A DNA stretch of 64,000 bases from Vitrella brassicaformis CCMP3155. Its lineage: Eukaryota; Protista; Chromerida. The DNA lies in NCBI GenBank assembly GCA_001179505.1, contig CDMY01000677.1, forward strand, positions 186,001 to 250,000, in the 5' to 3' direction. The translations under genes were made by a program, and so were the position numbers. The notes under the pieces were generated by a model. It made no database searches. It was not told where the DNA came from and saw only the letters and a program-made list of their open reading frames with translations. Positions 1-64,000 of the stretch are shown here, piece after piece (the first letter of the stretch is position 1; each line of letters begins with the position of its first letter).

Positions 1-180
1 GACTTCACTTCATGGGCCGCCGCCCAAGACGCCAAAAAAACAAAAAGCGGCAGCAACAGACAGAGGGGGAGGCGATGGGATGGTAGGGGATGCGATGGCA
101 GCGAGGAAGGGCACGATGCCTGCACAGGGCCTGCATCGCTGCCTGCATTCTATATTTCCATGTCTCTTTCACTGGAACAC

Positions 181-735
181 GTGAGGAACGCTTTTCTGTC
201 TCGATGTCTGCACAGGCTCAGTGCGGCTGAGTGCCCCAGATAATCGTTGCCTACACTTTATATCGTTGGTGCGTCTGTTCCCTTGGTCCGACCCCGCAAA
301 GGACACATGAGTGTGTCATAGTTATGCGAACTCGTTACCATGCCATTCATTGTAAGCAGACGTCATTACATGTATGTGCTCGGGGCATCCACCACGATGC
401 CTGTGATCCTACGTCTGCGTCTTATGTTTTGCCAAGTCATGGATGACTCTGCTTGCTGACGTGTCTCGGTGCGTTCATAAAGTCAGTGCGCTTAAGGCCA
501 ATGCATCATTGCATGTCGTCAAAACATTCTCGCGTCCACTCATCAGAGACACGACAAGAGCACATGATTTACTTCCAGTGTTTTCCACGACCAGCCAGCG
601 GCACAGCCATCGACAAGAACGACATGGATGTGACACCAGACCTCACACACGCCATTCAATCAAGCTGTTCGGCTATTCGAGGAGAGTCAAATGATTCGCA
701 TCACCTCACCCTTTCACTGTCAGGTTCACCGCCCC
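181..735. repeat. Non-coding repeat segment downstream of the family gene copy 1; inverted homologue is split between 57805-58170 and 63833-64000
   Basis: 343-735 aligns by eye with the reverse complement of 57805-58170 (e.g. gcatccaccacgatgcctgtgatcctacgtctgcg). 181-352 aligns with the reverse complement of 63833-64000 (e.g. gagtgccccaga..ccgcaaaggacacatgagtgtg). The spurious ORFs 231..446 and 63614..63952 are near-identical. Confidence 0.9.
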
Positions 736-769
736 ACCGTCCCCGCCTTCTAGCATAGCTGTCATCCTC

Positions 770-2120: not shown

Positions 2121-2475
2121 CAAAGCGCACAATGTACCAAACGACACATGCCGTATCCCTCAGATCACCAGGTGCGCAGCAGATCTCCCTGACCTACGCG
2201 CGTCGTCAGAGATCAGGACGCGCCAGCAGCCGTGGTAGTCCTCCCCGGGCTTGACGATACACACACGGGGCGTCGGTTGGTGCCGCTCCGCTCCGGTGCG
2301 AGCTAATGACTCCTGCAAAAATCAAATTTTGACTGGACTTGCGACACACGGCTCCCCCAATAATAACTTCTCCGCAAAGGGTTCGACGAGCCGGAGGGGT
2401 TTCGTGGGGCTTCTGGGTGGGCGCTCCTCTCCGGGAGACACCGCGTTTGGTCTGTCGTGTCGCCGGCCCAGCCAC

Positions 2476-3498
2476 ATGACGACCCACGAGAGGGGCTCGG
2501 ACTCCGCCAAAGGCACCGGCAAAGTGATGGTCGACAACCGTTCCACCGACAGGGCCCTCCCCGAGATGCCCAACGCCTCGCTGTCGTCTCCCGAGGACTC
2601 CACGGACGACAAACGTCACCCCGTGTCGCCAACCCTGACCGGCTCGCCGCCTCACATCGCATCGACCTTCATCGCTGGCAAGAGCCCCTACCGTCGTCTG
2701 AGCGGCACTGCGTTGTCACCGGGGAGGGGCAGGTTGGGGAGGGGCAGCTTTGGGATGGGCGGCGAGAGCCCTGAGGCTCCGAAGAAGAAGCAGCGGCTGG
2801 CACTGCTTCTGGCGAGACGCAAGGCGCTCATGCGCAAGCCGTAAGCAACGAATCGAGCCAGCGAGGGGCACACGGTGCCTTCAGGAATGGCTGTCTTGTT
2901 TGTGTGTGTCGGTCATGTGTGCAGGCACGTCATGCTGAATTTGGCCATCTCGTCTCTCCGCCGGTCGCCAAAGCACAACGAATGCCGCGCTCTGCTCACC
3001 AAGAACGCACGAGACATCAAGTCGCCACGCCGTTTGCCGCACGCCGCCTCGTCGCTCCCGCCTCCGCCTCCCTGGGAAGGGTATCCGATCTGCCCGCCAC
3101 TGAAGGTCAAGATTTCTTCCACACCAGTCCATCAGCGTGAGATAACCATCCCGTCCATCAACATGCTGACCGGCGATTGGGTCTTCCCTGATGGGACGGC
3201 GATGCCCTGCTCATTCGCCTGGTCAACAGGCACTGGAGACGGGCGGCAGACGGCTGAGGAGCAGCAGACGATGAACAAGGAAATCGACATGGTGCTGAGT
3301 AAGATGACGAGTATGACGGCCCATGGGGCTGCTGCTGCTCCTGCAGACGTGGGTGGGGGAGGGGCTCGAGAGCCTGCTGGTGGTGGTGGTGTGCTGGGAG
3401 AGAGCGACGATTTGGTGGCTGCGGAGACGGCATCGACTGAGGGGAGGGAGACCATTGACACCAACACCAACAGCAACGGAGGCCTCCCCGACACATGA
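2476..3498 (+). CDS. Hypothetical protein, 2 exons, basic NLS-like segment (PKKKQR..RRK)
   Basis: ORF 2251..2844 splices in frame to ORF 2875..3498 through gtaagc..tgcag (about 2843-2924). No family recognised. Confidence 0.55.
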
Positions 3499-4242
3499 TC
3501 GATCAGCCACACGAGACACGAGCCAATATGAAGAGACCCGCATGGATGTATACGTAATCACACCACACAGAGAGAGAGGGAGAGGGGATCTGACACATAC
3601 ACTTTTGGATTTGGGATCACTCATATTCTTTTGCTCTCCCATCTAGAGGAATCACAGAGAGAGAGAGAGAGAGGGAGAGAGGGCACACTAGTACTTCCAT
3701 TTGTTGTGGCGGCGAAGCCGCCGTACGGGATGCACGCAGCAGTAGGGGTGAGTGAATGGTGTAGGGTCCGTCGATTGAGAACGAGAAAAGACCTTCTCAG
3801 TGTGCTGGTGGTGAAGGGTCTGTTCATCTGGTCATGCAGGAAAGGGACAGAGACGCGATATATGGTACATGAGAACACCGACCCGACGAATGAATGGTGC
3901 ATCCTGTCATGAGGGGTGCATGTGGTTCATATGGCATCGCTGACTATCTATCTGTCTGTCTGTCCGCATGCCATGCACGCAAACACTTAACTGTCACATG
4001 CCCCCACGATGCATCGCATCCACCATCTGCTAACGCAACGACTGACTGACCCACAGACGACTCACCCACCCTACCCCATCTGTCTGTCTGTCTGTTCTAC
4101 CTGTATATACATCACATACACCGCCCACATAAATACACACACACACACATACACACATGCCCAGCAGAGACCACAATCTACATTGGCTGGCTGGCTGCCT
4201 GCCTGCCTGTCTGCCTGCCTCTACTCGCCCTCACTCACTCAC

Positions 4243-7200
4243 TCACAGCTGCGGCACGCTCCCCCTTCCCTCTTGGCTGCTCTGCCCATCCCCACCATCA
4301 TCACCATCGTCCTTCAACTCGCAACGCAGCCACCTATGGGCGGGGCCACATACACACACACACGGCCGACGTGTGTGTGCGCTCCTTCGCCCACATGCAC
4401 ACGCATACCTGATGATGATGGTCTCCTGCTGCTGGTGCAGCGTGTGGAAGATCTTGTTGGCGAACCGCCACTGGGCGTGGGTACGGCTGGATGGCAGCTG
4501 ACACGATTGGCCGGAGGGGGAGAGCATGCGCTTGATCAGGAGGAGCCAGAAGTTGTCGGTCTGGTGCCGTGCATCCAGCTGCGAAAAGAAGAACTCCGCC
4601 CTGCAGCCGGCCACACACACATCCATCCACACAACACAACACAATGCACAACGGATCCATTCGTGTGTCCACCCACCCTGATAGCAGGAATTTCCAGCTG
4701 TCCTGCATTCACGCACGCAGACAACAGACACACGCCCATCCGATGACGCACACGCACACGCACTGCACCCCCCAGCCACTCACGAAGACGGTGCACTTGG
4801 CTTCAATGAACTTGACGGGCGCTCCCCAGGGCAGTGGCGGCATGCCTTCCCCTCCCCCTCTGGCCAGCCACGGCTTCGTCTCGCCCACAGCCGTCAGATA
4901 GCCGTCCACACACCCATTGATCGACAGACGGCAATGCTCCGAATCGGCGGGCGGCTCCTCTGCAGCCCAACACACACACGGGGAAAGGCCACGTGCACAC
5001 GACACACATGCCTTGGCTGTCTGTGTGTTGATTGATGTACCGAATAGGATGAAGTCGAAGGGGAGGCCGAGCTCTTCCACGGCATTGACCCACACCAGCC
5101 GCCACGCTGCGCCGGGCTGGAAGCTCACGCGGTACGACCGCTGATCGATCTGACCACACGCAGAGCAGACGACGGGAGATGAGATGGGGGAGAGGGGCTT
5201 GGTGGGTGGCTGTGGTGGGGCTTTCGTGTTTCGACCTGTGAGTGTGTTTGGTAGTCTGACTGCTGCGTGAAGAACTTCGGAAAGACCTTTCTGAAGGCAA
5301 GCTCCTCACCGGCCCTATCAGGTGGTGTGACGCGACACACACAAGAGTAGCCATTCATTCGAATGTCTGTTGGTGCACACAACACAGCCAGCCACCCTCC
5401 GTGGTACCCACCGTACCTGCCTCTCCTCTCCAGCTCGTTCTCTTCGACCCTCTCGAGCTGCCGGATGGCCGTGACGCTACTGCTGCCGGCTGCTGCCTCA
5501 AGGCCACTAGCACCCCTTCACACACACACATACGCGCCAGACACTCTCTCCTTCTCCCTGTGTGTGTGTGTGCGGGTGCGTACCTGATCCTGGCCCTATC
5601 ATCAACGAGTGACGACTCCATCTGCTGCAGGAACCGATCCGTCTCCGCGTCGATCTCCATCTCACGCACCTCGCATATGGGCACGGGCGTCGGGCGGCGA
5701 GGATGATATTGTTGCTGGTGGGCAGGCACACGATCATGACGACGGTCGCCAGCACGCAGGTGCGTCGGAGTGGTGTGGATGGGGGGCTGGGAAGGGGTGG
5801 AGGATGGGGGTGGGTACAGGTCGACCTCGATGGCCATCCTGTCTGCTGCTGCTGCTGCTGATGGTGCTGGTGCTGCTGGTGTGGGTGGGAGGGGGCGAGG
5901 GGCGAGATGGACATCTGCTTGGGAGAGGGAGATGCCCTCACTCCTGAGCAGAAAGGACAGGTCGGCCGCATCTAACCCAATGCTGCTACGCAACCTGCAC
6001 ACAACCACAGACGACAAAGAAAGAAGGCGCATCACGCACCGAAGGACACATCAATCCGCCCACCCAGCCACCCAGCCACCCACCAATCGATCGCGATGCT
6101 CCTCAACGCTCCCCCAAGGTAAGCACTGATCGCCTCTCCGACATCCATCCTCTGCTGCACATGCTCGGCTTGCTGGTTGACATACAGCACCGGCACACTC
6201 TCGCCGCCAGCAGCGATGGGCACGTATCTGGATCTGCGCGACGGCTGCACCGATGGGTGCGTGAGGGCGGCGCCCAGGGTGACCGGGGGCATCCCGTGGT
6301 TTGCGACTGTGTACTGCACCTGCACAAGCCACCAAACGAGGCATGCATCCTGCGCCTGGGGAGTGGGGGGTTGGTTCATTTGCACACCTGCAGCTGGTTG
6401 ACAGGCACCTGATGAATGAATGAATGAAAGACAGGCAGGCAGGCAGGCAGGCAGAGAGGGGGCTGATTTGTGGGTGCGGGGAGTCGGCCGGGTGCATGAG
6501 ATGAGTGTGCAGATCTGACCTCGGTGATCCTGTCAAGCATGAAGATGGGGTGGGTGGGCTCATCGCGCGCAAGACGGGCCATCTCCTGCACACACCCAGC
6601 CCATCACAGCCAGCCAATTGACACAGACACCAATGTGGGGTGAGGGTGGGCCTAGGTGCGGGTGTGTGCAGACAGACCAACTCACCGTGGGTCTTTTTGA
6701 CCGGCAGACGGCGATGAGTGCCTGGATAACCGACGTGTGCAGCAGCCTCTGGTGCGGTTCAGAGGGGGGGCGGTGCATGGGGGCCCCAACGATGTACTCA
6801 GAGATGCGCACACATTTCTCCAGCCTCCTGACCCCCAGGTGGTGCTGCAGGAAGTGCTGCACACGCTCGTTGGGCGCGTAGGCGATCGAAATGCCCATCG
6901 AGAGCGGCAGCCGCATCCTGAGAAAGAGAGAGGGAGGGAACAGACGTGTGCTATGAATGCATAGCCGACACCGTGCGTGTGTCTTCGCATCGTACCCTCC
7001 CTGGTCCTGGATGAATGCATGTCGGCGGTCGACAAAGGTCCGCCGAGCTGAGTCCCACACAAGGGCACTGCACGCCACGCACGGTGGACACAGAGAAGAG
7101 ACACACACCCGTCCATCCATCCATCCATGTGTGTTCATCGTGCCGGGTGCGGTGGGTGCTTGCATACTTCTGGGCGAACGAAGGGTACCAGTGTGTGTCC

Positions 7201-45629: not shown

Positions 45630-48600
45630 ATGACACTCGCGGTGGAGGTGCCTGCGGTGACGCCAAAGGCCACTGCAGCATCGACCGCAGAGATGGACGA
45701 TGACACAGAGTGCCTATTTGGCCCCGACGCGGCTCGATGGGCGGCAAGCGCTCCCCCGGGGGCGTGCAGGATCACTCACAGCCTCACGCCTGCCGAGGAC
45801 ATCGACTCCTTGGAGGACGGCCTCTTCTCTGATGACACGGACACGTATATGAAGTCGGCAAAAGGTGTGACGGCCAGCGTCGGCGAGCGGCTCGGCATCG
45901 CCGCCGACCCCAAGAGCCGGCCCTTCGTGAAGCGTGTCGCCGCTCGCTTGGCCAAGGATCTGGAGCGGTTCCGTCGCATCCTGATGCGTCTGGATGAGAG
46001 CAACGAGGAGTGCCAGTTGGCCACGGCCGACATGCTCTACCGGCTCGTCGCTGAGCGCCTGCTGGCGTTCGTGGCACCGTCGGACATTATCCGTATGGTG
46101 CAGACGATCTTGACGATTTTGAGCGTGAAGGTGGCGAGCAAGGGGGTGGACGTGGAAATCCCCTGCGAGGTCAAGAGTCTGATCGCATTCCATCACATCG
46201 GGACGCTGCCGACAGACAAGCCCCTCTCCCCCGTCGACGTGGTGTCCGTCGCACGCCTGTACCTGATGCGGTGCGGGCTCCTCGTGGCACTCGAGCTTGC
46301 CCCTGCTGCGGCCATCGAGCTTCGCAACAGCTTCCTCCACACCCACAAGGCCACCATTCGCCAATTGCTCGACATCATCGTGGAGAGCGCACAGCCAGGG
46401 GTGGCTTTCGAGGCCGTGGCATTGCTGCGGGTGCTGTACAAGCCGAGCCCCCCAATTGCAGTAGCTGTGGAGCTGTGCAGCATATTTGTCGAGAGCTTGA
46501 AGGTGCCAGCGGACGAGCAGCCAGCGGGTGTGGAGGGGTTCTTCACGGTGCTCTTCAACGCTGCACAACTCTGGAGCACACGTAAGCCGGCCAGCCAGCC
46601 AACCAGCCGTCAGACAGCGATCGGTCGACTCCTCCTGACGTTGTATATTGACTGATTGACAGGTGAGGAGGAGTGGTCTGTGGTGAGGGCTGCACTGAGT
46701 GCCCACGTATACTCTCATTTCGGAGGCCTGGTCGACCTCATCGCTCATCGCCCAGCGTCGACGTACACGCGCTGGGCGGCCAGTCTCACCCTGGGCACCT
46801 TCATCCATGCGTCACTCACCCTGTGCATCACAAGAAGGAAAGGTATGTGCACATATGGATCGGAGAAGGTAGGCGGGCCGAGTGCAGGCAGGTACGTGTT
46901 TGCGCAGCTGACGGCCACGCCCTCATCGAGATTGAGCAGCATGGTGTGGACAAGGTGCTTTCTCCCGCCCCGATGCCGATGGAGCCGCTTCGGCGTCTGG
47001 TGCTGGATGCAGTGGCCAGGGAGGGCCTGGTGACCGCTGCAAGCCTCGATTAGCGGCATGAGCTGTCTGGGATGCTGATATCCAAGGCTCTACTCGTCCC
47101 GGCACTTCACATGATAGGTCGGTCAACTAAGGCGCGTCGTGGGCCTTGGGTGGGTGCGATGTATTGATGTGTGTCCTTTGGGTAATTGATCGTGCAGAGG
47201 CCGGGGAGACCGACATTCTGGTAGAGGCGGGGTTTGTGTCGACTCTGATCAGTCTGTTGGACACCTGTGAGCGCATCGGAACAAGCGTATCGCTTTGTCT
47301 GATTTGCCTCAAGTCCCTGATCACGGGCCATCGAAAGGTCAGGTCTCCACCCACCCTGTGGCTACCACATTTGACCCGGCGGCGTGTGTATAGGTGCTTG
47401 AGACCGATGGCCTAGCGGAGGCCCTGTGTGGTGCGTTGCTGAAGGAAGCCCGTGGAGAGTTCCTCCACTGCGAAGGACTAGGGTACTTTCGCGACGTTGA
47501 TCGCATGTACGCCATCGACCTACTCAAGGGACTCGTGAGGTGAGTCAGTGAGGGACGGCTGGAGGGAGGGATTTACTGCGAAGCATCTCTCTCTGTGTGT
47601 GTCTGTGCCTGTCTGTCTGCAGCTATGGCAGATCGCTGGGTGGCAAGACGGCGCACAATCCCTACACACGCCAGATACTGCAGGTACCAATGTTGCAATA
47701 TGAGCATCCACATCCACGAGCCCCATCCACCTGCCTGTATCCATCAGCTGGAGTCGGTCAAGGCCATGCGGGCCCGCAAGAACAACATCAACGTGCCACC
47801 GCAGGTCAGCCGCGCACACCGCACCAGGCACGAGACCCATGCACCCACCCCGGCTGCCATGACTGTCTGCAGGTGTCGGCCTTCTTTGACTCGCTGGCAC
47901 ACCAGGACAAGAGGGACAGCAAGGCCAAGTCGACTCAGCCGTCCTTGTCGGATGCTCAGCTGGCGGCAAAGGACAGAGAGGCGCAGCGCAGAGCAGACGA
48001 GCTCATCGAGGAGGAACGGCGCGAGAAGGCAGCCAAGACCAAGAAAAACAACAAAGCCAAGAAGGGCAAGGCCTCCGAGTCGGCAGTGGAGCCGTCCCTG
48101 CCCTCAACGGCCGCACCAAGCAGGTGGGAGGGACAGCCACACGCACCACCACAGACCAGTTGGAACACTGCGTGTCTGCTGTGTGCAGGTCGTCGTCTAC
48201 TGTAGTGGAGGAGGACGTGGAGCCGCCCACGCCGTCTTCATCCAGTGCCGACACGTGAGCAACCAACCAATCTACTTGGCGCGATGTACGCCCAACCTCC
48301 ATAGCATGTGTCTGAGCGGCCTCTTTTGTAGGTCGGTTCCGTCGGTTGCACTTGCAGCGGATGGGGGGCAGCGAGAGGGATTGATCGAGTCGACAGCGAA
48401 TGAGGAGAGCGACGACAACAACGGCGACAGTGACGACATGCTCATCAACTCGGCTTTCGGCCAGCACGCACGACAGAACAACACCGACAGCCACAAAACA
48501 CACAAGACCGGCAAACAGGGCATGAAAGACCTTCTCACACCCACCCCTGACCCGAAGCCACTGCCCCCGCCCCGCCCCTCCACCACGTCCACCGAGAAGG

Positions 48601-51600
48601 GGCAGGGCCGTCACGGCAAACCCCGCCTCTCCACGGCCACTGCGTCCCTCCCCGCGGCTGTGGATGGGCAGCAGCACAACCACACCAACACCAGCACCAA
48701 CAAGAAACAAACGGCGGCCCCCCCGCGATTCGGGCAAGGTTCGCTGGCCCCCTTCGCCAAGGTGATGGTGCCCGCAGAGGTGGACGATGACAAGGAGGGG
48801 ACAGTCAGCCACAACGCGGCTCAATGGGCGGCGGCAAACGCTCCCCCAGAAACCTACGACATCGAACTCAGCCTCAAACCCGTCAAGGACATCGACGCCT
48901 TGGAGGACGGCCTCTTCTCTAACGACATGCAGACGTACATGGCGTCGGCACAAGGTGTGACGGCCAGCGTCGGCGAGCTGCCGCTGCCGGTTCTGAGACT
49001 CAACCCCAAGAGCCCTGAGTTCGTCAAGCGCGTCGCCGCTCGCCTCGGCAGGGATCGGGAGGCCTTTCGTCGCATCCTGATGCGTCTGGTGGACGAAAGG
49101 AACAAGGAGTGCCAGGTGGCGACTGCCGACATGCTGTACCGCCTCGTCTCTGAGGGTCTGCTGTCGTTCGTGGCCCCGTCGGACATCACCCACATGGTGC
49201 AGGAGATCTGGACGGTTGTGGGGGTGGACTTGGCGAGCAAGGGGGTGTTGGTCGAGCTCCGCGGTGAGGTGAAGAGCCTTGTCGCCTTCCAGCTCATCGG
49301 GACGCTACCGACAGACAAGCCCTTCCCCCCCGTCGATGTGGTGCTCAAAGCTCGCATGTACCTGATGCGATGCGGGCTCAAGTCGGCCCGCAACAGCCTC
49401 CTGCAGACCCACAAGGCCACCATCTGCCAAGTGCTCAGCATCGTGCTGGAGAGCGGCCCGCAAGGGGTGGGTTCTGAGGCTATTCGATTGGTGCAGGCGA
49501 TATACGAGCCGAGCCCGCCCGTCACGCTGCCCGTCGCCGTGGCGGTTGAGGTGTGCAGCATGTTTGTAGAGGCCCTGCAGCTGCCAGCGGACCAGCAGCC
49601 TGCGGGTGCGAGGGACTTCTTCGCGGTCATGTTCAACGCCACAACACTCTGGATGATAGGTAAACAAAGAGGGATCGACTTCTGTCATGCAACTTGTGTC
49701 TTGATTGACAGGTGAGGAGGAGTGGTCTGTGGTGAGGGCTGCGCTGAGTTCCCACGTATACTCTCATTTCGGAGGCCTGGTCGACCTCATCGCTCATCGC
49801 CCAGCGTCGACGTACACCCGTTGGGCGGCCAGTCTCACCCTGGGCACCTTCATCCATGCGTCACTCACCCTGTGCATCAAAAGAAGGAAAGGTATGTGCA
49901 CATATGGATCGGAGAAGGTAGGCGGGCCGAGTGCAGGCAGGTACGTGTTTGCGCAGCTGACGGTCACGCGCTCATCGAGATTGAGCAGCATGGTGTGGAC
50001 AAGGTGCTTTCTCCCGCCCCGATGCCGATGGAGCCGCTTCGGCGTCTGGTGCTGGATGCAGTGGCCAGGGAGGGCCTGGTGACCGCTGCAAGCCTCGATT
50101 AGCGGCATGAGCTGTCTGGGATGCTGATATCCAAGGCTCTACTCGTCCCGGCACTTCACATGATAGGTCGGTCAACTAAGGCGCGTCGTGGGCCTTGGGT
50201 GGGTGCGATGTATTGATGTGTGTGTTCTTGTGGGTGACTGATTGTGCAGAGGCCGGGGAGACCGACATTCTGGTAGAGGCGGGGTTTGTGTCGACTCTGA
50301 TCAGTCTGTTGGACACCTGTGAGCGCATCGGAACAAGCGTATCGCTTTGTCTGATTTGCCTCAAGTCCCTGTTCACAAAACATCGCAAGGTCCGTCCGGA
50401 AGCCACCCTTCATCCAGCACATCGACCTTGTGGCGTGTGTGTATAGGTGCTTGAGACCGATGGCCTGACGGAGGCCCTGTGTGGTTTGCTGCTGAAGGAC
50501 GCCCGGGGAGAGCTCATATACGGCGATGGGCGAGAGTGCTTTCGCGACGTTGATCGCATGTGCGCCATCGACCTACTCAAGGCACTCGTCAGGTGAGTCA
50601 GTGAGGGAAGGCTGGAGGGAGGGATTTACTGCGAAGCATCTCTCTCTGTGTGTGTCTGTTCTGTCTGTCTGCAGCTATGGCAGGTCGCTGGGTGGCAAGA
50701 CGGCGCACAATCCCTACACACGTCAGATACTGCAGGTACCATGGTTGCAATATGAGCATCCACATCCACGAGCCCCATCCACCTGCCTGTATCCATCAGC
50801 TGGAGTCGGTCAAGGCCATGCGGGCCCGCAAGAACAACATCAACGTGCCACCGCAGGTCAGCCGCGCACACCGCACCAGGCACGAGACCCATGCACCCGA
50901 CCCGGCTGCCATGACTGTCTGCAGGTGTCGGCCTTCTTCGACTCGCTGGCACAGCAGGACAAGAGGGGCAGCAAGGCCAAGTCGACTCAGCCGTACTTGT
51001 CGGATGCTCAGCTGGCGGCCAGGGACAGAGAGGCGCAGCGCAGAGCGGACGAGCTCATCGAGGAGGAACGGCGCGAGAAGGCAGCCAAGACCAAGAAAAA
51101 CAACAAAGCCAAGAAGGGCAAGGCCCCCGAGTCGGCGACGGAGCCGTCAGTGCCCTCACCAACGGCCGCACCGACCAGGTGTGAAGGAAAGCCACCCACT
51201 CCACCACCACAGACCAGACGCAACGTCTTTTCATCCGTGTGTCTGCTGTGCGCAGGTCGTCGTCTACGGTAGTGGAGGAGGACGTGGAGCCGCCTGCTCC
51301 CTCCTCATCCAGTGCCGACACGTGAGCAACCAACCAATCCACTCGACGCGATGTACGCCCAACATCCATAGCATGTGTCTGAGCGGCCTCTTTTGTAGGT
51401 CGGTTCCGTCGGTTGCACCTGCAGCGGACGGGGGGCAGCGAGAGGGATTGATCGAGCCGACGGCGAATGAGGAGAGCGACGACAACAACGGCGACAGTGA
51501 CGACATGCTCATCAACTCGGCGTTCGGCCAGCATGCACGACAGAAGACCACCGACAGCCACAAAACCAAGACCGGCAAACAGGGCATGAAAGACCTTCTC

Positions 51601-53311
51601 ACACCCACCCCTCATGCGAAGCCACTGCCCCCGCCCCGCCCCTCCACCACGTCCACCGAGAAGGGGCAGGGCCGTCGCGGCAAACCCCGCTTCTCCACGG
51701 CCACTGCGTGCCTCCCCGCGGCTGTGGATGGGCATCAGCACAACCACACCAACACCAGCACCAACAAGAAACAAACAGCGGCCCCCCCGCGAGTCGGGCA
51801 AGGTTCGCTGGCCCCCTTCGCCAAGGGGATGGTGACGCTGAAGCCCCCACATGGCAGAGGGAGTGGGCCGATGGCTCGCGGCCCACCTGTCCCGGAGGGC
51901 CCCTCTCGCTCTACGACAGCCGGGAGTGGCGCCGGCAGGGGCCTGATGTCTCTGTTTGCTAATGAGTCGACTCCACCGCCCCGCCCCCTCTCCCCGCCCC
52001 CATACCCAACACTCCCGTCAGCCGAAGAGCTCAGAAAGGCCGACCAGTGGCAGGAGCAGCAGCAGCAGGCGACATTCGAAGCCGAGTGGCCGAGGTAAGA
52101 CAGACTATAGCGGTCGAAACTTCTGCACCTCTGATCTGCCTGTATGTCTGTAGTCTCCCTACTACACCTGCGTCAGCCGCTTTCGGCCCGTCGTCACCAC
52201 GGCCACCTGTCAACCCACAGTGAGGCACATGATTCTGCCGATCGATAAGTGCATTCATGAGCTGTGTCACTCATCGTTCGGTGTGCACGCAGTACTCCAC
52301 CGTTGCCCGTTAGCCATGACGGCCCCATCAACATCGGCTTCTCAAGCGTTGCCCTGCCACACGATCCCATTCCTCTCTCCCCGCCCGGCTCGCCACTCCC
52401 TCTCTTGCCGATGTCGCACTCGGATGGCCCCCCCGCCGTCGCTGCTGGTGGTGAGGGGCCGTCATCTTCGGTCGACCCGTTCTACGACGACCATGACAGT
52501 GACGATGACATGCATGTGCCGCCCCCGCCGCCAATATTCGAATGGGAAGAGGATGAGGACAGCGGCTACGGTACCCCAGCACCAGCACCAGCAGCGGCAT
52601 CATCGAGTAGTGCATCCATCCCGTCTGCTGCCAACGGGAGAGCGGGTGGGTGAACACGGCACCGAACAGAGTGGCCAAGGGGCGAATCAATCATGTGTGT
52701 CATGAGCAAGGTTTGGCACGTGTGTGCTGTCCGTCCGTCTGCAGGTCTTCTGAGGGCCATGGCGATATGTACCACTTGATGCTGCAGATGCAGCTCGAGA
52801 TGCAAGCCATGAGACAACAGTGAGCCAGCCGAGAGGCAGCCACCAAACGAACCGAATGCCAGCCTTCTCCTTCGTTTCCCATTTCAGGCTCGCCCAGATG
52901 AGTGGGCAGCAGTCCTCACAGCAGCCCCCATCCAGCAGCTCGTCGGCTCCTCCACCCCCTCTCCCTCTCCCTGCCCCTCTCCCTGCCCCTGCCCCACCCA
53001 CCACTCAGTCTCAGCCAAGCGGCCAGTGCTGTGTGTGTTACGGCGAGCACGGCCCGGCCACTTTCGCCTTCGTCCCCTGCAGGCATCTGTGTTTGTGCGC
53101 GCATTGCCACCAGCAGTACAAGGCCCGTCACGACCAGAAGGTGGCGCGGGTGCAGCAGCGGAACCGCACCAGGGACAAGCCGCTGCCGCTGGCGCAGTAC
53201 CGATGTCCCTACTGCAATGGCGAGGCGGTGCACTCTGACACGCTTCCCAACCTCCGGCAGTGGGTGGAGCAGATTCACACGATCGACGGAGGCGACGAGC
53301 TGTGCGTTTAA
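45630..53311 (+). CDS. Lineage-specific helical (ARM-like)/coiled-coil protein with internal tandem duplication and C-terminal C3HC4 RING
   Basis: Two units each have a large helical exon, small exons and the coiled coil DREAQRRADELIEEERREK. The final exon reads CCVCY..AFVPCRHLCLCAHC..CPYC. Both units have an in-frame TAG or a 24-nt intron (see findings). The start is uncertain. Confidence 0.7.
45688..51834 (+). repeat. Tandem duplication, unit ~3.06 kb (45688-48770 and 48772-51834)
   Basis: 46650-48770 versus 49699-51834 is near-identical including introns. The large first exons (45688-46580 versus 48772-49660) are clearly more diverged. Confidence 0.93.
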
Positions 53312-54001: not shown

Positions 54002-56423
54002 CTACAGCTGGGACTGGTCCACCCCACTATCGTCCACACGCCTCTTCTTCGGCACCCGCTTCAACTTACGCCTCACTGCCGGCCTCTCACACGCGACCGC
54101 CCTCTCAATCCCATCTCCATCACACGACATCCCTCCCCCTCCCTCTCCCCCCGCCCCAGCCTGGCTCTCGCGAGGCCGCTTGACCAGCCGCTTGATCAGC
54201 CGCTTGTTGGCGCTGCTGCCCACCTGGCTGCCCTCCTCAACGTCGATCGGCGATGAAGACGACATGCCCACCATGCCATTAGCATCAGCACTGACAGCAG
54301 CAGGTGCAGGTGCAGGTGCTGCTTCTGATGTTGGCTGGTTCCGGGGAGAAGGTGGAGGGGACGACGCCAGAAAGTCGCCGAAGATCTGATCGAGAATATC
54401 CCTCTCTGGCGGCTCTTCTGGTGCACCAGCTGCGGGGCCCGTAGCATCGCCGGCTGCTGCAGCTGCTGCTGGTGCTGCTGCTGGTGGGAGAGACGGTGAT
54501 GGAGGGGCCTGTGGGGGTGGTGCAGGGGTGTCTTCGGGGTCATCGGATGGGAAGAAGAAGTCGTTGATGTCAAATCCTAGGACGGGCGAGGCCGGAGCGT
54601 CCGCGGCAGGTGGCTCGGGTCGCTCGGACGACCGCCTGAGCTCGAGTGCCCGCTGATCTCGCTCATAGGCGGCCTCGTGACGCCTGATCAACACACACAC
54701 ACACACACACACAGAGAGAGAGAGGCAGGTAGGTGTGAGAATGATTGCCCGTTGTTCAGTGCCACACCGTTTCCGGTCAGGCGCGAGGCTCTCCCACTGC
54801 TCCTGCAGGTTCCTCACCAACTCATCTACCTGCATCCATGACAACAAACAGTCGAAGAAGACGTGATAGGTCGCCACAGCAGGCATGTGCGTGTGCGTTG
54901 GTGTTTGGCTCACCTCGGCGTACGGGCATTCGCCTCGCTTGAAGACGAGCATCTCATCCACGAAACGACTCCTGGGCGACCGCACAGCCTCCCCATTAGG
55001 AACACCCTCCTCGACCACACTGAACACACCACACAAATCGACATATGACCAATGTTGGCAGGTGTTACCAGGTAAGTCCGCTTTCTCACCGTTTCTTCTT
55101 CTTCCTGGCGGCGGCCTTCGGTCTCAGCGGCTTTGGCCCCGCCTTGCGCTTGGCCGCCCGCCGCACCCTCTCAGGCACCACATCCACACGCCCACCACTG
55201 CTATGCCCTGCCGCCGGAGCCGCCGCCTTAGCCGAACCAGCAGCAGCGGCCGGCTGCCCTTCATCCACTGCCGCCTCCTCCCCGTCCCCATTATCGGGCC
55301 CCTGTGGTAGCTCCTGTTTGTCCAGTATCTCCTTGATGTCGGTCTCATAGAGGACGAGGACCTTCTTGGCTATCGACGGGTCGTTGTTGAGCGCCATGGC
55401 GGCCTCGTACTTGGTGGTGCTCGTCACCGCCCGCCCGTCCTTGAGGTAGCTGCCCACCACCAGGTAATCGGTGTTGCGCGTGACACTGCTCTGCACCTTG
55501 CCCCCGAGTGCCCTGACTGGCCTCTCCGCGTCCTTCCTCGTCAGCTTCTTCAGCTCGCCCGTGAAGACAAAGCTAGCTCCAGCAAAGGGGTACTCGCGTG
55601 TCGGGAGCTCGGGCTCCTTCTTGGGCTTCCTGGGACCCCTCCTTGCCTTGGCCTTGGCCTTGCCCTTGGCGCCCGCTGCTGTCCCAAAGCTCAGGGGAAT
55701 GCGGCGGGGACCACTCCCGCTGGTTTTCGCCCCTGGATGTGGCTGCCTATCGTCTTGTGGTGCGGCCTGGGGCGCAAGCTGGGCAGCGAGGGGCGCGTCG
55801 TCATCCCATAGCAGCGGGTCGGTGGTCCCCCTGGCATTGTTGGCGTCAACAGCGTGGTCGCTGGATGGCGTCACCATGTCGATTGGTGGAGGGGGAGGGG
55901 CAGACGCACGGGGAGGGATGGGAGGAGGGGCAGGGGAGGGAGCGGGGCAGACCATGCCCGCCGGGTGATGCAGACAGGCGCGGCTGATCATTCCGATGAT
56001 GTGGTGGCAGATGCCGTACTCTAGAAACACGTGGCAGTCGCTGCACGCCTTGTCCACCAAAGCCAGCTCATCGCCATAGCGCAAGGCCGCACGCACTTCA
56101 TGAGAACGACCGCTGCTGCTCTTGGTGGAGCTGCATCGGCTTGATAGCACCCACTGCCTGCCGCCATCCACCTCGTTGGTCGTGTTGCGAGCAGAGAGGT
56201 TGCTGATGAGCTCCGGTTTCTTCAGTACGCCGGAGCGGACAGCCATGAGGTTGTAGAAGGTCTGTGGGACGGTCGCTGACTCATGCCGAATCGGCGAAAG
56301 GTGTCCCAGGTCCTCTAACTCCTCCTCCTCCTCACGACAAATCAAAGCCGCCACCTCCTCCTCAGTCACAGTGGCTCTGTGATGCCAATACGGCTCCTCC
56401 AAATCAGTATTCTGCGGTTCCAT
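54002..56423 (-). CDS. SWIM-like Zn finger + RFC1/ligase-type BRCT + HMG-box-like protein
   Basis: [17 protein letters not shown] (SWIM-like). [50 protein letters not shown] (BRCT). An NLS-like RKKKKR. Spliced [38 protein letters not shown] (HMG-like). Confidence 0.75.
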
Positions 56424-56459
56424 CGTGAATTCATACACAATTCAAAAACTGAGGACATT

Positions 56460-56475: not shown

Positions 56476-56535
56476 ACAACGGTTCAGCCGTTGGTGGGCG
56501 TCTTCTTTTGGGCGCCTTTTGCATCACGCCGAGTG

Positions 56536-57752
56536 ATGGCGAAGCGTGTCTGCACGGAGGATGCTTTGGCGGCCTCCTCGGCCGCCTCCCACACGTCGCA
56601 AAGCCGCTTCCCCGACGTCCTTGGTGAGGCGGGCATTGTTCTGGCGGACTTCACGACTGCACCGGACCTGTACGCCTTCAGACGGACCTCACGCGCGGCC
56701 ACACACCAGCTGAGTGCCAACTACCTCGTCCAGCGCATCAGCCGGTGCTCACCGACCAGCAGCCGTGTGAGGCCGGCGGACGTGCAGCGTGTGGGGTCCA
56801 AGGCGGTGCTTGACGGCCGGGCGGACAGCCTCAAGCAGTACAGCCTCTTCGGCCACCTGCTGGGGCAACATGAAGTGATAGCCCTCCGCCAGATCGACGG
56901 CATCGAGCAGCTGGGTGAGACACTGGTGACTGTCTACACACAGCAGACGCTCCCCGTCAACCATGAGTTCATCGGTTCATTTGACCCAACAGATCCTGTC
57001 GTGAGAGGTGAGGGACCGCGAATGCATGCAAGTGGCATGGCAGAACAGGGGATGCCAAATTGTGTGCTATGGTGTGTGTTCCGTTCCCTTCAGCGAACAA
57101 CGAGGTGGATTACATGAGTTTCCGACAGCTGGCCATCACGCGGTAAGTAAGGCGACACGACCCATGGAAGCCACTTGTACACATGTGGATGATCCGTCTG
57201 TGTGCCTTTGCCTAGTTTTCCGTCCCAGGAGCGGAGGATGTGTTATCGCAGCATCCGGCAAGGCCTATACGCTCAGTTTCGGCACATGTTGCGGCGAGCT
57301 GCCGATCTGCTGACACAAGTAGGCCAACTACCGAGATCAACTGCTATGTCGGGGGTGCCTGTCTCTTCTCATCGTTGCAGGCCGCCATTCCCTGGGGCCG
57401 TCAGATCAGGCTGGTGAGAGTCGACCATGGGCGGCGGAGCGGCTCCATCTACCTATGCGGAGAGGGCAAGGATGACACCTTTGCTGCCTGCGTGACCCTC
57501 CGTAGTCGCGACGACCGCTGTTGCACGATTGACCTCTACACGACTGAGACTCCCCAGCCGCACCAGGAGGGCCCCCTCCGCTTCCCCCAGACACTGCAGC
57601 TGGCCCGTCAGCTGCTGGGCAATGACGAACAGACGCTCTTTGGCGATTTGGCGATACAAGTGCGCGCCTTCGGCCCGCTGCCGAGGAAAGTTATGGCGTT
57701 GATGGCCGCGGGCATGACAAAAGCACAAGCCTGGGCCACGGTTGCACCCTAG
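56536..57752 (+). CDS. Lineage-specific multicopy family gene, copy 2 (internally deleted; possibly a pseudogene)
   Basis: Starts MAKRVCTEDALAASS and is paralogous to 770-2120. It lacks about 60 aa (GGILSWD..RAIDSLP) present in copy 1 and has TAG where copy 1 has CAG near the C-terminus. Confidence 0.65.
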
Positions 57753-57804
57753 CAGGGAACAGGAGGATGACAGCTAGGAGAAGGCAGGGACGGTGGGGCG
57801 ATTA

Positions 57805-58170
57805 ACCTGACAGTGAAAGGGTCAAGCGATGCGAATCATTTGACTCTCCACGAATAGCCAAATAGCTTGATTGAATGGCGTGTGTGAGGTCTGGTGTCAC
57901 ATCCATGTCGTTCTTGTCGATGGCTGTGCCGCTGGCTGGTCGTGGAACATGGGTACTCTTGTCGTGTCTCCGATGAGTGGACGCGAGAATGTTCTGACGA
58001 CATGCAATGATGCATTGTCCTTAAGCGCACTGACTTGATGAACGCACCGAGACACGTCAGCAAGCAAAGTCATGACTTGGCAAAACATAAAACGCAGACG
58101 TAGGATCACAGGCATCGTGGTGGATGCCTCGGGCACATACATGCAATGACGTCTGCTCAGAATGAATGGC
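57805..58170. repeat. Left part of the split inverted homologue of 181-735
   Basis: Reverse-complement match to 343-735; homology stops at aatgaatggc (58161-58170). Confidence 0.9.
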
Positions 58171-60174
58171 TTGATGGTACTGCTGCCAAATGGGGTCGGG
58201 ATTGTCTGTCAGGCCGGGGGCGGGGGGGAGGTGCCGGTCCACTGTGTTGCGGCGACAGAAGCTGGGCGGCTTCTCGCCCTCTGGCACCACCTGACAAAGA
58301 CAGATTGATGCTCACAGGTGGATTACACAGAAGTAGCTGGGACATGGCTGTTTTGTGTGTACCTGTGGTGGTCTGCTGCTGCTGCCGTCTTTGTCCTGTG
58401 TTGATGTGGCTGGCTCGTCCTCTTCAGCCGTGAGGGTGTCAAAGTCATCCTCTGCATCATCATCTGCAGCAACCGACGCACACTCATGTGCCACCATATG
58501 ATGCCTGCCGAGTGAATGTGTCCCTTGCGTCCGTCGAGGGCCGCATCGAGAAGCGCTTCCACCCTACAGGCAGGCAGGCAGACAGATATCACAGCTGTGA
58601 CACATCCACGTGTGTGTGACCATGGTCATGTAGGTCGCACACTCGTCGTCTGCCTCCTGAATGGCCGCGTCTCGCCGGGAATCCTCACACCCTGAACCAA
58701 ACACACAGCCAGCATCCACCAGCTTGGTCGAGGCAGCTTTCTCTCCGAGGCATCACCATGTTGGCTGGCTGTGCGCTGCAGGTCGCTGTATCGCTGACAC
58801 ACTCGGCCGAGCTTCCACTGGTGCACCGCTGCACGGGGGGCACCTGGTGGGGTGAGTGACACACACAAAGGTCAATGAGCTGGACACACGAGACGGGTGA
58901 TTAATGACCACTGACCATCTTCCCCAATGCCTTTCTGGTAGCAAATCAGTCCGTTCGGATGAATCACAGACACATTGCCTGACAGACAGACAGACAGACA
59001 GACAGAGAGTGGGTGACGGACGTCTCAAGGTCTAATGGCGTGTTCCCTGGCCGGCCTACATGTGGTGTCGAGTTGGTGCGCCTTGTCGGGGCTGTAGAGG
59101 CGGAAGACCTTCCGCCCACGCAGCAACACATACAGATTGTCGTGCTGCACACACACAACTAACGAAATGCAAAGGACATGACGGTTGGCTGTGCATCTGT
59201 CTCACAAAGTCATGGTGGAGTCCACTGGTGGTGCCAGCGCGGCTCTGCCCCATCCACACGTTGTACTGATACGGCAAGAGGTGACTGCACAAGCAGACGA
59301 ACAACAGTGTGCCGCGGAGAGAACAACTGGTTGTTTCCATCCTCTCCTACCCGAACAGCTTGGGCCTCAACGGCACATCAGCGAGCAGGGCGGACGCGGG
59401 ATGCCCAGTGAGCGACACAGGACCTGCTCTCAACACCCAAGACCCGGTGGACACAGCCATCAACAGAGTCCATCAGAGTGGTGTGTGTTGACTGACCGGT
59501 GCCTGTCTCGTCTATCGTCTGTGTGGTCAAGTAGAGATCCTCACGACCTGCACCCAACATGCAGCCAGCACAATCAGCGGCCAAGTGGCTTCGTGGCTGC
59601 ATCCAAAGTGGATCGCTTGCCTTTATCGAGCTCATCGAGGAAAGCACCGAAGGCCATCCTTACTTTGCGGCCCTCACCTGCACGGCCACAAAAGACAAAG
59701 CGATGACCGAACTCTACTCCTGCCCATCCCTCACCAAATTGGTCAAAGTCATTCCGCCGGTGCTCGACATCGACAAACGAATCACCGGCCCTCTGTCGCA
59801 AATAGCTGTTCGTCCACCGCTGGAGACCCTTGAATTCGCCGCTCAATGAGTCAGTGAGCACCACTGGCATTCGCCACTTGACGAACTGATAGAAGAAATC
59901 ACCAGCAGAGAGAGAGGCCAGGGGCACACCCTCAATGGGCCAAAACACATCAGGCGAGAACCTGAATCGACAGGCACAAAGTGCACCAACAGAGGAGCAA
60001 TGGGAGGTGTGTGCTCGGGTGTGCTCGTCCAGCGGCTTCCTTCTTTGCATCGTCGAACTCACTCACTCACCCTTTGTATGTGACGACGGCGTCTTGACAT
60101 CTTTTGCCTCTTTCTGCCCTGTTTGTGAAGATCTGCTCATCCCGCTGCCTTCTCGGCTTCTTGCGATGCTTCAT
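58171..60174 (-). pseudogene. JmjC/cupin-8 family gene, 3'-truncated at the insertion boundary
   Basis: FVKWRMPVVL..WTNSYL..GDSFVDVE..FGEG..MAFGAFLDEL, YLTTQ, YQYNVWMG..TTSGLHHDFHDNLYVLLRGRKVFRLYSP, and KPPSFCR. The frame runs into the repeat before any G-x-x-LYLP-x-GW-x-H-x-V strand. The start is uncertain. Confidence 0.75.
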
Positions 60175-60272
60175 TTTCACTCCTCACAACAGCTAAGCTC
60201 GCAGACCTCGGGCAGGGTTTCGGAGCCACTCTCTCTCAGCCGCGCAGATCTCGCAGGTCTGGCTTACCAGCA

Positions 60273-62911
60273 ATGTCGAGCAGGGAGGAGCCCAACTTGG
60301 AACGGCTTCTGCAGTCGCTGCTGCCTCGTCTGGCCGCCTTGCCCACCACTCATGAGCGGCTGCGAGTCGTCAGCCCCCTCGACATCATTGACCACAGCAT
60401 CCCTGAGTCAGCCACAACGACCCCTTTCGGCCACACGCCCCGCGTCAAGATCAGGATCTTCCGCAAAGTGCGAGCATTCGGCTTCCGGGACGTGGCTGTC
60501 GTCGGCCACTACTATGGATCTATGCCGCGGGTGGAGGACCGATTTGCGCAGCTGCTGCGGGCCGAGGAGCCGCGGATGAGCGGCTGCTGGTTCATGCTGG
60601 GAACAGGTGGGCAAAAGGGCCATAGTGAGGGTTCACATTCGTGTCATGATGAGAAGTGCTCTGTGCTTTGTCAGGCGACGATGAGGCGTTGTCACGGCTG
60701 GAGGCGTCCGGCATCCCCAATGTGATGCTCGACTACACATTCCGCAACCCCTGCACAGGCAGCAGCTCACTCGACAGCCTCAAGACCACCATCGGCCGCA
60801 TCCATGAGCACTTCAAACAGCTCGACAGGGAGGTGGGCATGGCTGCCGACAATGACGGCATGCCTCACTTGGACGACCAGGCGAGTCAGTCGGGCTACCG
60901 GGAGCTGAAGCGCGATCACCTGTACATCAACTTTGTGGATCTGCTGGACTTCAACATCACCATGGACGCGCCAGAAGTGAAGGTGGGACCTCACCGGTGA
61001 CTGTGATTGCCAGAGGACGATACTCATGCATTCCATGTGGCGCTTTCCATGTGCAGAAAGTGATGGATTACCTGTCGTCTGAGAGAATACCGATTCTGAA
61101 AGGCATCTGTTTTGAGGGTGCGAGAGGCATTGCGTTTGCTGATGAGTACGGCGATGTGACTCAGCGCCTCCGGTGAGCGCCAAGACAGAGCAGTGCACTG
61201 AGCCCACTGTACTTGTTATTCTGTCTCCAGCGCCTTGTTCCCTGCGAGTGACTTCAAGTTGCTGGTGCACTCACACGCTGGGCCGCACGGCGACAACTCA
61301 CAGGCGGCGGCATTGGAGTGTGTCCGTCGGGGGGCAGACGGCGTCTGGGCAGGCTTCATCCCTCAGGCCGCACAGACGGGCCACAACTGCTCATTGCAGT
61401 ATCTGGGCTACCTGCACAGCTCCGGCAACAACCAAGTCGCGCAACTCTACAATCTAAACACGGTGAGATAACAGGGGCGGGCCATCCGGCATCCAGAACA
61501 ATATTCTAAGATGCCGCGTTGTGTTGTTCTGCAGGCTGTTGAGACGGCCCGATCGCTGCATGAGTTGAGTTTCCCCGGCGAGCCCATCCCAGCCGACTGC
61601 CCCATCTTCGGCAGCAACGCCTACTCGTGGGTCCACAGCGTCTTCAGACACGACAGACGGACACCGAGAGGGCTGCCTGCACGAGCGGTGAGCCAGCGGC
61701 AAGCACTAGGTAGCACTAAGAGAGGACATAGACACGTGTGTTGCTCCCCGTCAACAGGTTGGTGCGACAGAGGGTGCGCGGTTTGCTGGCATGACGACCG
61801 ATGTCGACATGCTCATCCAGCGACTGGACGGCCTCATTGGCAGCGATTTTTCTTCGATGCAGCCTGATGCGAAGAAGGTCTCCGCATTGGGCGTTGTGAC
61901 AGCGATCCAGCTCCTGCTGAGTAAAGAACATCAGTGCAACTTCAACGACCCCGACAACCTCAGATACATCTACAGACACGTGAGAGGAGCAGTAAAGGCA
62001 GAAGCAACAGAGAGAAGACGGGAGATGACTTTCGTTGTGCTTGTAGGTCGACAAGGTGGGTTTTGGCGTTTCTGACACGGCCTCTCTCATCAAGAGGCCA
62101 CACATACGCCATCTGCGGCAGTGGCTGAGACGGCCCTCCCAAGATGCGCGTCTCCAACTGCTCTACAGGTGAGAGGAGAGGTGTGTGAACCAAGCAGTGA
62201 ATACGCGAAGAGGACTGTCTCTCTTGTCTGTCAGGTCGACACGTGATGGTGACAGCTTTGATGACCTCATGAGCAAGGTGGGGTCGGCTCGCGGTCTGCT
62301 GTTCGCCGTCAAGCACAACAACAACAAGTTCGGCGTCTTCTTCGACGGCTCCCTCAACCAACCGAGCGACCCGAAATCCGACCAGACGACCAGAGGCGAC
62401 CTCTTCTTTTCGCTCAGCGGCAGCTTCCCTCAGCCCACACAGATCCACCCATCGCAAGACAGACAGCGGGTGGATGTAGCCGGGAGGGACGGGGCTGTGC
62501 AGGGGACCGGCGGGGCATCCGGCAAGATCGTGATGGCAGATGGCTACCTCTGGCTGGCGTATTCGAGGTCGTCCACTCCGTCGCCCTCCATCCTCAGCTG
62601 CCATCACTGGATCGACAAAGACATCACACCACCAGGCTTCACCGGCGGAGAGAGCTCTGACGGTAGAAACATTCTGGCAGACACCATGGGCTTCACGGCT
62701 GACGTCATTGAAGTGTATCAGGTGGGTGCGAAATACACGCACGTGCACGTCAGCGATCATCCCTGCGGTGTGCTATGTGTGTCAGGTGGTGAGAGGCCCC
62801 TTCCCTGCCATCGATCGTGACGCCCTCCTGCCCCTGCCCGTCGACTTCCCCAAACCTCTTCCTGCGAGTGCTCTGTCGTCGCCCGAGAGGACGTGCCGCA
62901 GACCAGCCTGA
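60273..62911 (+). CDS. Divergent DRE-TIM-barrel (HMGL-like) protein fused to a C-terminal TLDc domain
   Basis: IIDHSIPES..GHT..KIRIFRKVRAFGF..RVEDRF and LLVHSHAGPHGDNSQAAALECVRRGADGVWAG..GHNCSLQYL. Continuous in-frame splicing (YRH|VDK|RPHIRHLRQWL..LQLLYR|STRDGDSF..FGVFF..ADVIEVYQ) links it to the TLDc domain. Confidence 0.7.
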
Positions 62912-63299
62912 CTGACTGATTGATCGTGTGATTGTGTGTGGTTGGTGTACTGTCTGTTGGTGTTGGCCTGCGTGTTGGTTTGCGGCAATTGTTTCGCCGC
63001 AACGGTCTTGTGAAGTCAGCCATGTGTGTCGTTCTTTTTGTACGTGTCTGCGCGTCGAGGTGTCCTTTTATCCGAGCCATCGCCGTAGTGTGCACACGAT
63101 TTGTCCTACAACGCTCTACCCTTTTGCGTGCATCACACCGCTTCTTTGTGCAGTGAGGTGATTTTCATGCAAGTCGTGCCGGTACACTTGATGCTGCTGT
63201 CGATGAGCAGCAGAGAGACCACCGCACACGCTGTTGTCTTTCAGCGTCAAGAGATCCGACTTCCATGTCTTCCATGGACGTGCCGTAGCTCGTACCTGA

Positions 63300-63832
63300 T
63301 TGATAGTTGCTGGCCGTCATGAACGGACTCTGACACATCTACTGAGTACGAACAGTTGACTGGATGATGTCCCTTTCCAGGCTGAAAAGCCATCGCATGA
63401 ATGAGTGATCACCACGTTTGTTTCTGTATGGAGCCAGCCAAGCCAGCGGCCGCCTTATACTCGAATGCAGTCAGCCAACCACACCAGGAGGTCGTCTACA
63501 GCCGCAGCAAAGTCACAGCCACCAGCCACTGCCAAACCGCATCCCTTAGCGACAAGATGGCCAGTAAATTGCGTGGGTGTGGTACGGGGTGTGTGGCGGG
63601 GGCCGAGGACTCTTCACTTCGCATGGGCTGATCGCCGCCATCGTTTCTTGCTGCGTGTCTTGGCCTTGGCTTTGCCTGACGGGTGGAAAGACACGCCTAC
63701 ACGTCCACATGCAGATGAAGGAGCCGTGTGTGGTGTGTGTCTCACCTTTGGCGGCTGCCTTGTGCTTTTTGGTGAGCGGGCGCTTCGAGCCAGCATGACT
63801 CGCGGCCCTCCGCGACCTTTCCGCCCACACAC
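63300..63832 (-). pseudogene. Possible 5'-truncated gene fragment (basic, K/R-rich exons) at the right edge of the insertion
   Basis: Spliceable exons SRRAASHAGSKRPLTKKHKAAAK|GVSFHPSGKAKAKTRSKKRWRRSAHAK with a canonical gtgag..gtag intron. No start codon inside the block was identified with confidence. Confidence 0.35.
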
Positions 63833-64000
63833 ATGAACGGCATGGTAACGAGTTGGCATAACTTTAGCACACTCATGTGTCCTTTGCGGGGCCGGACCGA
63901 GGGAACAGACACACCAACGATATGAAATGTAGGCAACGATTGTCTGGGGCACTCAGCACTGAGCCTGTGCCTACATCGAGACACAAACGTGTTCCGCACG
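63833..64000. repeat. Right part of the split inverted homologue of 181-735
   Basis: Reverse-complement match to 181-352, beginning at atgaacggcatggtaacgag. Confidence 0.9.

Follow-up and report, generated by a model that had tools for sequence, protein, structure and literature searches.

The stretch of DNA analysed here (the window, 64,000 nucleotides) spans positions 186001-250000 of contig CDMY01000677.1 (hereafter C677) of Vitrella brassicaformis. Near its right end, one arm of an inverted segmental duplication is interrupted by a 5,662-bp block, which carries a truncated JmjC/Cupin_8 gene and a TLDc gene placed head to head, and is bordered by a 9-bp direct duplication. We describe the block, its junctions and its relatives, and propose that it is an insertional duplication which probably arose at a staggered double-strand break, without the help of a transposon. 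All genome-wide searches reported below cover the 72,700,666-bp assembly (1,064 scaffolds), which was built from short reads (PMC4501334). For the protein-family searches, exons were taken singly against Pfam, and bits were summed where stated.

The split arm and the junctions of the block

The geometry of the arms and of the block was established by a repeat scan and by direct reading of the junction letters. The left arm is uninterrupted from 77 to 1799, and its inverted homologue, about 55 kb away, is found in two pieces, 56767-58173 and 63833-64052. The initial annotation had noted that a segment at 181-735 was contiguous and that its inverted copy was split, and both approaches agree with this. 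The features concerned are the following.

77 to 1799, minus strand: left arm of the inverted segmental duplication, contiguous, carrying a lineage-specific gene
342 to 350, minus strand: unfilled ("empty") site in the left arm, with ATGAATGGC present once
56767 to 58170, plus strand: right arm, part A, made of the 3' portion and downstream flank of the arm gene
58162 to 58170, plus strand: left copy of the 9-bp target duplication, ATGAATGGC
58171 to 63832, no strand assigned: inserted block, 5,662 bp, missing from the otherwise collinear left arm
63833 to 63841, plus strand: right copy of the 9-bp target duplication, ATGAACGGC, with one T>C change that is also found in a partial second copy of the block (copy C, see below)
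63833 to 64000, plus strand: right arm, part B, which extends past the window to about 64052, and to 64912 when compared to copy C

On its minus strand, the unsplit copy reads ...TTACA ATGAATGGC ATGGTAACG..., with the 9-mer at 342-350. The left junction of the block (58170/58171) reads ...CAGA ATGAATGGC / TTGATGGTA..., and the right junction (63832/63833) reads ...CACACAC / ATGAACGGC ATGGTAACG... The two halves of the split arm overlap by 9 bases at the unfilled site, which leaves one 9-mer on each side of the block, as had been reported at first. A match of 8 bases out of 9 at a fixed junction is expected by chance with a probability of about 1e-4 (hand calculation). Junction microhomology amounts to 0-1 base at the left, where the last base C of the 9-mer may equally derive from the donor of the inserted DNA, and none is visible at the right. 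Six bases common to the target and the block start, ATGGTA, were considered as a priming microhomology; they are offset by 3 bases and would not yield the junction that is seen, and were treated as a chance match.

The arms are homologous from some 2.2 kb to the left of the window up to window position 1800, apart from an interruption of about 1.75 kb where their sequences are unrelated. They are 90-97% identical at window 128-1000, and 60-85% further inward. What had been called a repeat in the initial annotation is not a family dispersed in the genome but belongs to an inverted segmental duplication with two copies, of which it forms one arm. The duplication includes a lineage-specific gene, which occupies the inner portion of the arm, and three further copies of this gene are present on contig C312. 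The five copies (window 504-2105 and 56533-58012; C312:6829-8122, 94820-96459 and 124444-125742) share 68-78% DNA identity, and a Pfam search of their longest open frames gave no match. In the right arm the gene is on the plus strand, and its coding similarity, judged by frame-specific conservation, stops near 57670, which places the insertion site some 500 bp downstream of the gene. Just inside the inner boundary of the right arm, an open frame of 450 codons at 55086-56438, on the minus strand, contains a BRCT domain (Pfam E 2.8e-9).

Contents of the block and its relatives in the genome

A whole-genome search with the block, together with a local self-comparison, recovered four relatives.

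copy3, C677:294443-299264: 85% identity over block positions 1-4875
contig C1027: 90% identity over block positions 1-2378 and 78% over 2625-5135
C312 copy: TLDc gene only, 75% identity
copy C, C677:258493-263070, inverted: about 86% mean identity over block positions 2184-5662, plus 1,080 bp of right flank

The first two of these, copy3 and C1027, are of donor type. They share the head-to-head JmjC/TLDc gene order of the block and align with it from exactly its first base, so that donor homology starts at the very nucleotide where arm homology stops. To the left of this base both continue with another flank that they have in common, 570 bp of JmjC 3' sequence. The initial annotation had called for a donor locus with a full-length JmjC gene and matching gene order; these two copies show the same order and encode the missing JmjC C-terminus beyond the break. 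The copy3 unit sits 45-50 kb away from the block, on the same scaffold.

Contig C1027 (unplaced, 5,785 bp) begins and ends inside the TLDc gene, at points 247 block positions apart, and in it the 3' part of one TLDc gene lies tail to tail with the JmjC gene. It is probably one period of about 6 kb of a JmjC/TLDc tandem array that was collapsed in the assembly. The idea that the block itself is one array period, for instance a re-integrated circle, was examined and dropped, as its last 520 bp or so fail to align with donor sequence upstream of the block start.

Within the block, the following features were distinguished.

58171 to 60174, minus strand: 3'-truncated JmjC/Cupin_8 gene, with introns retained and the HHD iron-binding motif kept
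60175 to 60272, no strand assigned: divergent intergenic spacer, 98 bp, between start codons at 60174 (minus strand) and 60273 (plus strand)
60273 to 63050, plus strand: TIM-barrel-like/TLDc gene, apparently intact, with an approximate 3' end set where paralogue homology ends
63306 to 63832, no strand assigned: 527-bp orphan tail of the block, shared with copy C alone (97% identity)

When single minus-strand open reading frames (ORFs) of the block were searched against Pfam, no JmjC match was obtained; the gene was detected later, through a whole-genome Cupin_8 scan and the donor ORFs. Exon-wise, the window copy matches positions 152-180 of the Cupin_8 profile (JmjC fold) at 59052-59144, minus strand. 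Positions 221-250 are matched in copy3 and C1027, where they are encoded past the left end of the block, and not in the window copy. Summed over exons, the two donors reach 42.5 and 38.4 bits, above the family cut-off of 27.4. A three-way alignment and the translations show that the window copy retains its introns and the GLHHDF iron motif, and that its similarity to the donors breaks off after ...PIWQQYHQ. In the donors, this is followed by VTAKAGEM, by a GTTAGT intron and then by LYLPASWFHEV..., the strand bearing the distal iron-ligand histidine. Past the break, the window frame reads 113 nt into the arm, up to a stop at 58057.

Since the donors continue past the break with the rest of the JmjC domain, the window copy has been cut mid-exon and lacks the LYLPASWFHEV strand, in agreement with the early remark that a JmjC gene is cut at the left junction. 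A full cupin fold with its HxD...H iron ligands is not present in it, the ...WFHEV strand being missing, and from its sequence this copy should be catalytically dead. We had considered that the break might fall on a 5' splice site (the donor GT); a frame check showed the donor exon running 28 nt further, to GTTAGT, which puts the break in mid-exon.

The second gene contains a TLDc domain at 62185-62820 (Pfam TLD, E 6.6e-7). Its exons are open and share 61-80% protein identity with the distant C312 paralogue, and on this basis the gene looks intact. It had been described initially as an apparently intact DRE-TIM/TLDc gene. The TLDc part of this description was borne out by Pfam and by the open exons; the DRE-TIM part was not, single exons remaining below the Pfam threshold. 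A scan of the genome for HMGL-like domains gave no match within the window. An HxH...GHN-type motif is visible in the gene, and the TIM-barrel ("DRE-TIM") assignment is based on such motifs only. The 98-bp spacer may be a bidirectional promoter, as its position between two head-to-head genes suggests.

Homology of the block to all donor-type copies is over by about 63305, and the right 543 bp of the block occur only here and in copy C, along with the flank. A source for the tail was sought by DNA search and by two ORF-protein searches of the whole genome, and only copy C was found. The tail gave no Pfam match and lacks the codon-position GC pattern of real exons. The apparent gene fragment noted initially at the right edge is therefore not upheld: it has no Pfam match, no genome relative beyond copy C and no coding-like GC pattern. 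The insert either combines DNA from two sources or derives from a paralogue that was lost or left unassembled.

Copy C also carries the right junction, and the two copies differ by 1-5%. This bears on the possibility that the block is an assembly artefact, namely a short-read misjoin of paralogous segments. The assembly would lend itself to such errors, being made of short reads from a genome with many paralogues 85-97% identical, and C1027 does resemble a collapsed repeat. Against a misjoin, the right junction exists in two diverged copies, the left junction offers no shared sequence on which an assembler could jump, and the region contains zero Ns. We hold this explanation to be very improbable.

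The TLDc gene of copy C has another in-frame 5' end from the equivalent of 60354 leftwards, its first 27 codons or so being replaced by an unrelated start (MASSGDETAESERTS...) at C677:263071-263170 (window-equivalent 77071-77170, beyond the window). This could be either a new first exon recruited at the duplication breakpoint or a fast-evolving N-terminus. Beside the right arm, just beyond the window, a segment of about 0.4-1.1 kb occurs in three copies, direct and inverted, that are 92-97% identical (C677:250131-250989, 255574-256670 and 258493-259263); from its sequence, this appears to be a nest of recent small duplications.

Five TLDc paralogues could be compared (window 60354-63305, C677:260060-263070, C677:296560-299264, C1027 and C312:43414-46006). 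Their identity is patchy: from one 150-bp window to the next it varies between 52% and 100%, and the nearest neighbour changes along the gene, copy C and C1027 being 100% identical at 60709-60859, and copy3 and C1027 97-99% identical at 62171-62467. Such a mosaic indicates, as far as sequence comparison can tell, frequent gene conversion. Dating by divergence was dropped, paralogue identity being mosaic. Elsewhere in the window, a unit of about 3.07 kb is duplicated head to tail (45685-48770 and 48772-51834, 86% identical overall, with patches of 77-98%), and is possibly another mosaic. A 247-bp stretch at 44808-45054 matches its own reverse complement at 77% and forms an imperfect palindrome.

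Proposed insertion by break repair and the alternatives

Signs of a mobile element were looked for at the ends of the block. When its first n bases were aligned with the reverse complement of its last n bases (n=30, 60, 150, 400), scores fell within or below those of 200 shuffles, so no terminal inverted repeats (TIRs) were detected. Neither terminus of the block is repeated elsewhere as an element family, and a genome search with the MULE transposase profile PF10551 gave nothing at E<=0.01. The initial statement that neither TIRs nor a transposase could be seen thus stands. For Mutator and Pack-MULE insertions, a target duplication of 9 bp is within the usual range. The pair ATGAATGGC / ATGAACGGC agrees with the 9-11 bp of Pack-MULEs, and TIRs, shared termini and an autonomous MULE transposase are all lacking. 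With no TIRs and no MULE domain in the genome, the Mutator/Pack-MULE analogy, which comes down to the number 9 alone, fails, and a repair-type reading is favoured.

Capture by a Pack-MULE-like or other DNA element with eroded TIRs, or integration of foreign DNA by a transposase or integrase acting in trans, could still draw on the duplication length, and on a precedent: an integrase can insert non-element DNA with target duplication (PMC2939329). Besides the featureless termini, two observations make it improbable. Mutator and hAT are unlisted in the published census of Vitrella transposable elements (TEs), which total only about 1.5 Mb of the genome (PMC4501334). The left end of the block, moreover, falls inside an exon whose sequence just runs on in the donors.

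Helitron and retrocopy features were considered as well. Helitrons are characterised by 5'-TC ... CTRR-3' ends and by insertion between A and T with no target duplication; the block starts with TTGATGG, ends with CACACAC and has the 9-bp duplication. Target-primed reverse transcription yields short duplications of variable length, so the 9-mers could also be expected from an RNA-mediated insertion, by a long interspersed nuclear element (LINE), of a long unspliced read-through transcript. LINEs are, in addition, the biggest TE class in Vitrella (PMC4501334). The JmjC introns are however all kept and align with the donor introns, the spacer with its putative promoter and both divergent genes are present, no poly(A) was found at either end of the block, and the apparent coincidence of the breakpoint with a splice site vanished on the frame check. 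A LINE-type insertion is close to refuted.

The block consists of ordinary genomic DNA that breaks off within an exon, junction microhomology is 0-1 base, the target is duplicated over a short length, and nothing about the block is typical of a mobile element; this combination fits staggered-break integration or filler copying. Two further observations are those looked for in a filler insertion by break repair: a homologue that continues beyond the left end of the insert (copy3 and C1027), and an unfilled paralogous site with contiguous flanks (left arm, 342-350). We therefore favour, with reasonable though far from full confidence, a non-transposon insertional duplication at a staggered double-strand break, by end-joining or by filler-DNA synthesis. 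Of the possibilities raised initially, TIR-less capture or templated break repair, this keeps the general idea, which is supported by the donor-type copies and by the failed TIR and MULE tests.

In the scenario that we propose, the source was a fragment of about 5.1 kb of a JmjC/TLDc head-to-head unit, plus the 527 bp without traced origin, and the target was the downstream flank of the lineage-specific gene in one arm of the inverted duplication. Nicks 9 bases apart would have opened the target, and fill-in of the overhangs would have yielded the 9-bp direct duplication. The fragment would have been end-joined, or synthesis-dependent repair would have copied it in as filler DNA; the left junction has no more than 1 base of microhomology. 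As a consequence, the TLDc gene arrived whole with its putative promoter, and the JmjC gene cut in mid-exon, without its distal iron-ligand strand. Later on, as sequence comparison shows, the right 3.5 kb of the block and at least 1.08 kb of flank were duplicated again, in inverted orientation, giving copy C, and paralogues swapped patches by gene conversion. The T>C change of the right 9-mer is common to copy C, which gives the order: insertion, then mutation, then partial re-duplication.

A different history of the left arm was considered, in which the block was ancestral to both arms and the left one lost it, by precise recombination between the 9-mers after an older insertion, or by a deletion at chance microhomology. 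In favour of it, there is only one unfilled site, compared to two right junctions that are filled, the arm-gene copies that serve as outgroups fall short of the site, and the arms are 90-97% identical around it, compared to only 78-90% between the block and any donor. A chance-microhomology deletion, on the other hand, would have had to end on the very base at which donor homology begins, a roughly 1-in-1000 event, and a precise loss would itself need that insertion, 9-bp duplication included, to have happened earlier, so that it alters the timing of the event and not its nature. Loss from the left arm seems rather unlikely to us.

The main alternative to break-repair insertion is template switching of the type called fork stalling and template switching or microhomology-mediated break-induced replication (FoSTeS/MMBIR). 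A stalled replication fork would have left the arm, copied about 5.1 kb of a paralogous unit nearby, then the template of the tail, and returned 9 bases upstream of its exit, which would have produced the short duplication. Donor-type copies 45-50 kb away on the same scaffold, an insert composed of two origins, and a neighbourhood dense with nested inverted and direct duplications are what such a process would predict. It is less easily reconciled with microhomology of at most 1 base at the left and none visible at the right, and the second template was not found in the whole-genome searches. We consider it unlikely, while granting it some weight.

Several points weigh against the insertion by break repair that we favour. 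For the 527-bp tail there is no source. The donors reach at most 90% identity to the block (78-90%), in a mosaic pattern; the actual donor would have disappeared, been left out of the assembly or been overwritten. In the three C312 copies of the arm gene, similarity ends at window 504, 150 bp short of the insertion site, and with outgroup copies stopping there the unfilled site cannot be shown to be ancestral. The left junction is known from a single instance in a short-read assembly. Finally, we infer the staggered break from its product alone, and one old event cannot separate end-joining capture, synthesis-dependent filler copying and template switching.

Significance and comparison with known systems

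The block shows a whole gene with a putative promoter copied to a new site, and its neighbour cut to a dead fragment, with no transposon involved, in a relative of apicomplexans. Together with the re-duplication and the conversion mosaic, it illustrates how, in a genome so poor in TEs, small gene families take shape through segmental copying and repair. No new mechanism is revealed, and the value of the case is that of one data point on such inserts genome-wide. A broader proposition, on which we place little credence, is that Vitrella recurrently inserts pieces of ordinary DNA at staggered breaks, independently of a transposase and with short target duplications, the pieces ranging in size from introns of 80 bp to gene blocks of 5.7 kb. 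If true, break repair, not transposons, would be what chiefly drives the shuffling of genes and introns in this TE-poor organism, and if one nuclease cuts the staggered breaks, an unrecognised integration activity would exist.

Insertional segmental duplication by break repair is a known class, to which we assign the event; it is new only in its organism and its clean readability. With Pack-MULEs, the block has in common a 9-bp target duplication and a cargo made of a gene and a gene fragment; unlike them, it lacks both TIRs and shared termini, its genome has no MULE transposase, and its edge is a plain break within an exon. The FoSTeS/MMBIR duplications seen among human copy-number variants resemble it by a nearby template, a composite insert and surroundings rich in inverted duplications, but typically show junction microhomology of at least 2 bases, compared to 0-1 base here.

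In rice, Vaughn and Bennetzen (2014, cited in PMC7407515) reportedly described a patch-mediated repair of staggered nicks, in which fill-in gives short direct duplications without transposase. The block is like the reported products of this repair in its short direct target duplication, which would come from fill-in, and in the lack of a transposase. Those events are reportedly for the most part small tandem duplications, not foreign inserts of 5.7 kb.

Gene movement through break repair with filler DNA is an established mechanism, and has been put forward to explain genes inserted at non-collinear positions in grasses (Wicker, Buchmann and Keller 2010, summarised in PMC3445842). Within the limits of that summary, these insertions are like the block in being copied fragments that carry genes, at a non-collinear site and without transposon termini, with a locus of the donor type retained and genes truncated at the edges. 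The summary ties them to breaks made by neighbouring transposons, whereas no TE was seen at the Vitrella site. Compared to the grass events, the block stands apart by its clean 9-bp duplication and by its host, a chromerid alga with about 1.5 Mb of TEs.

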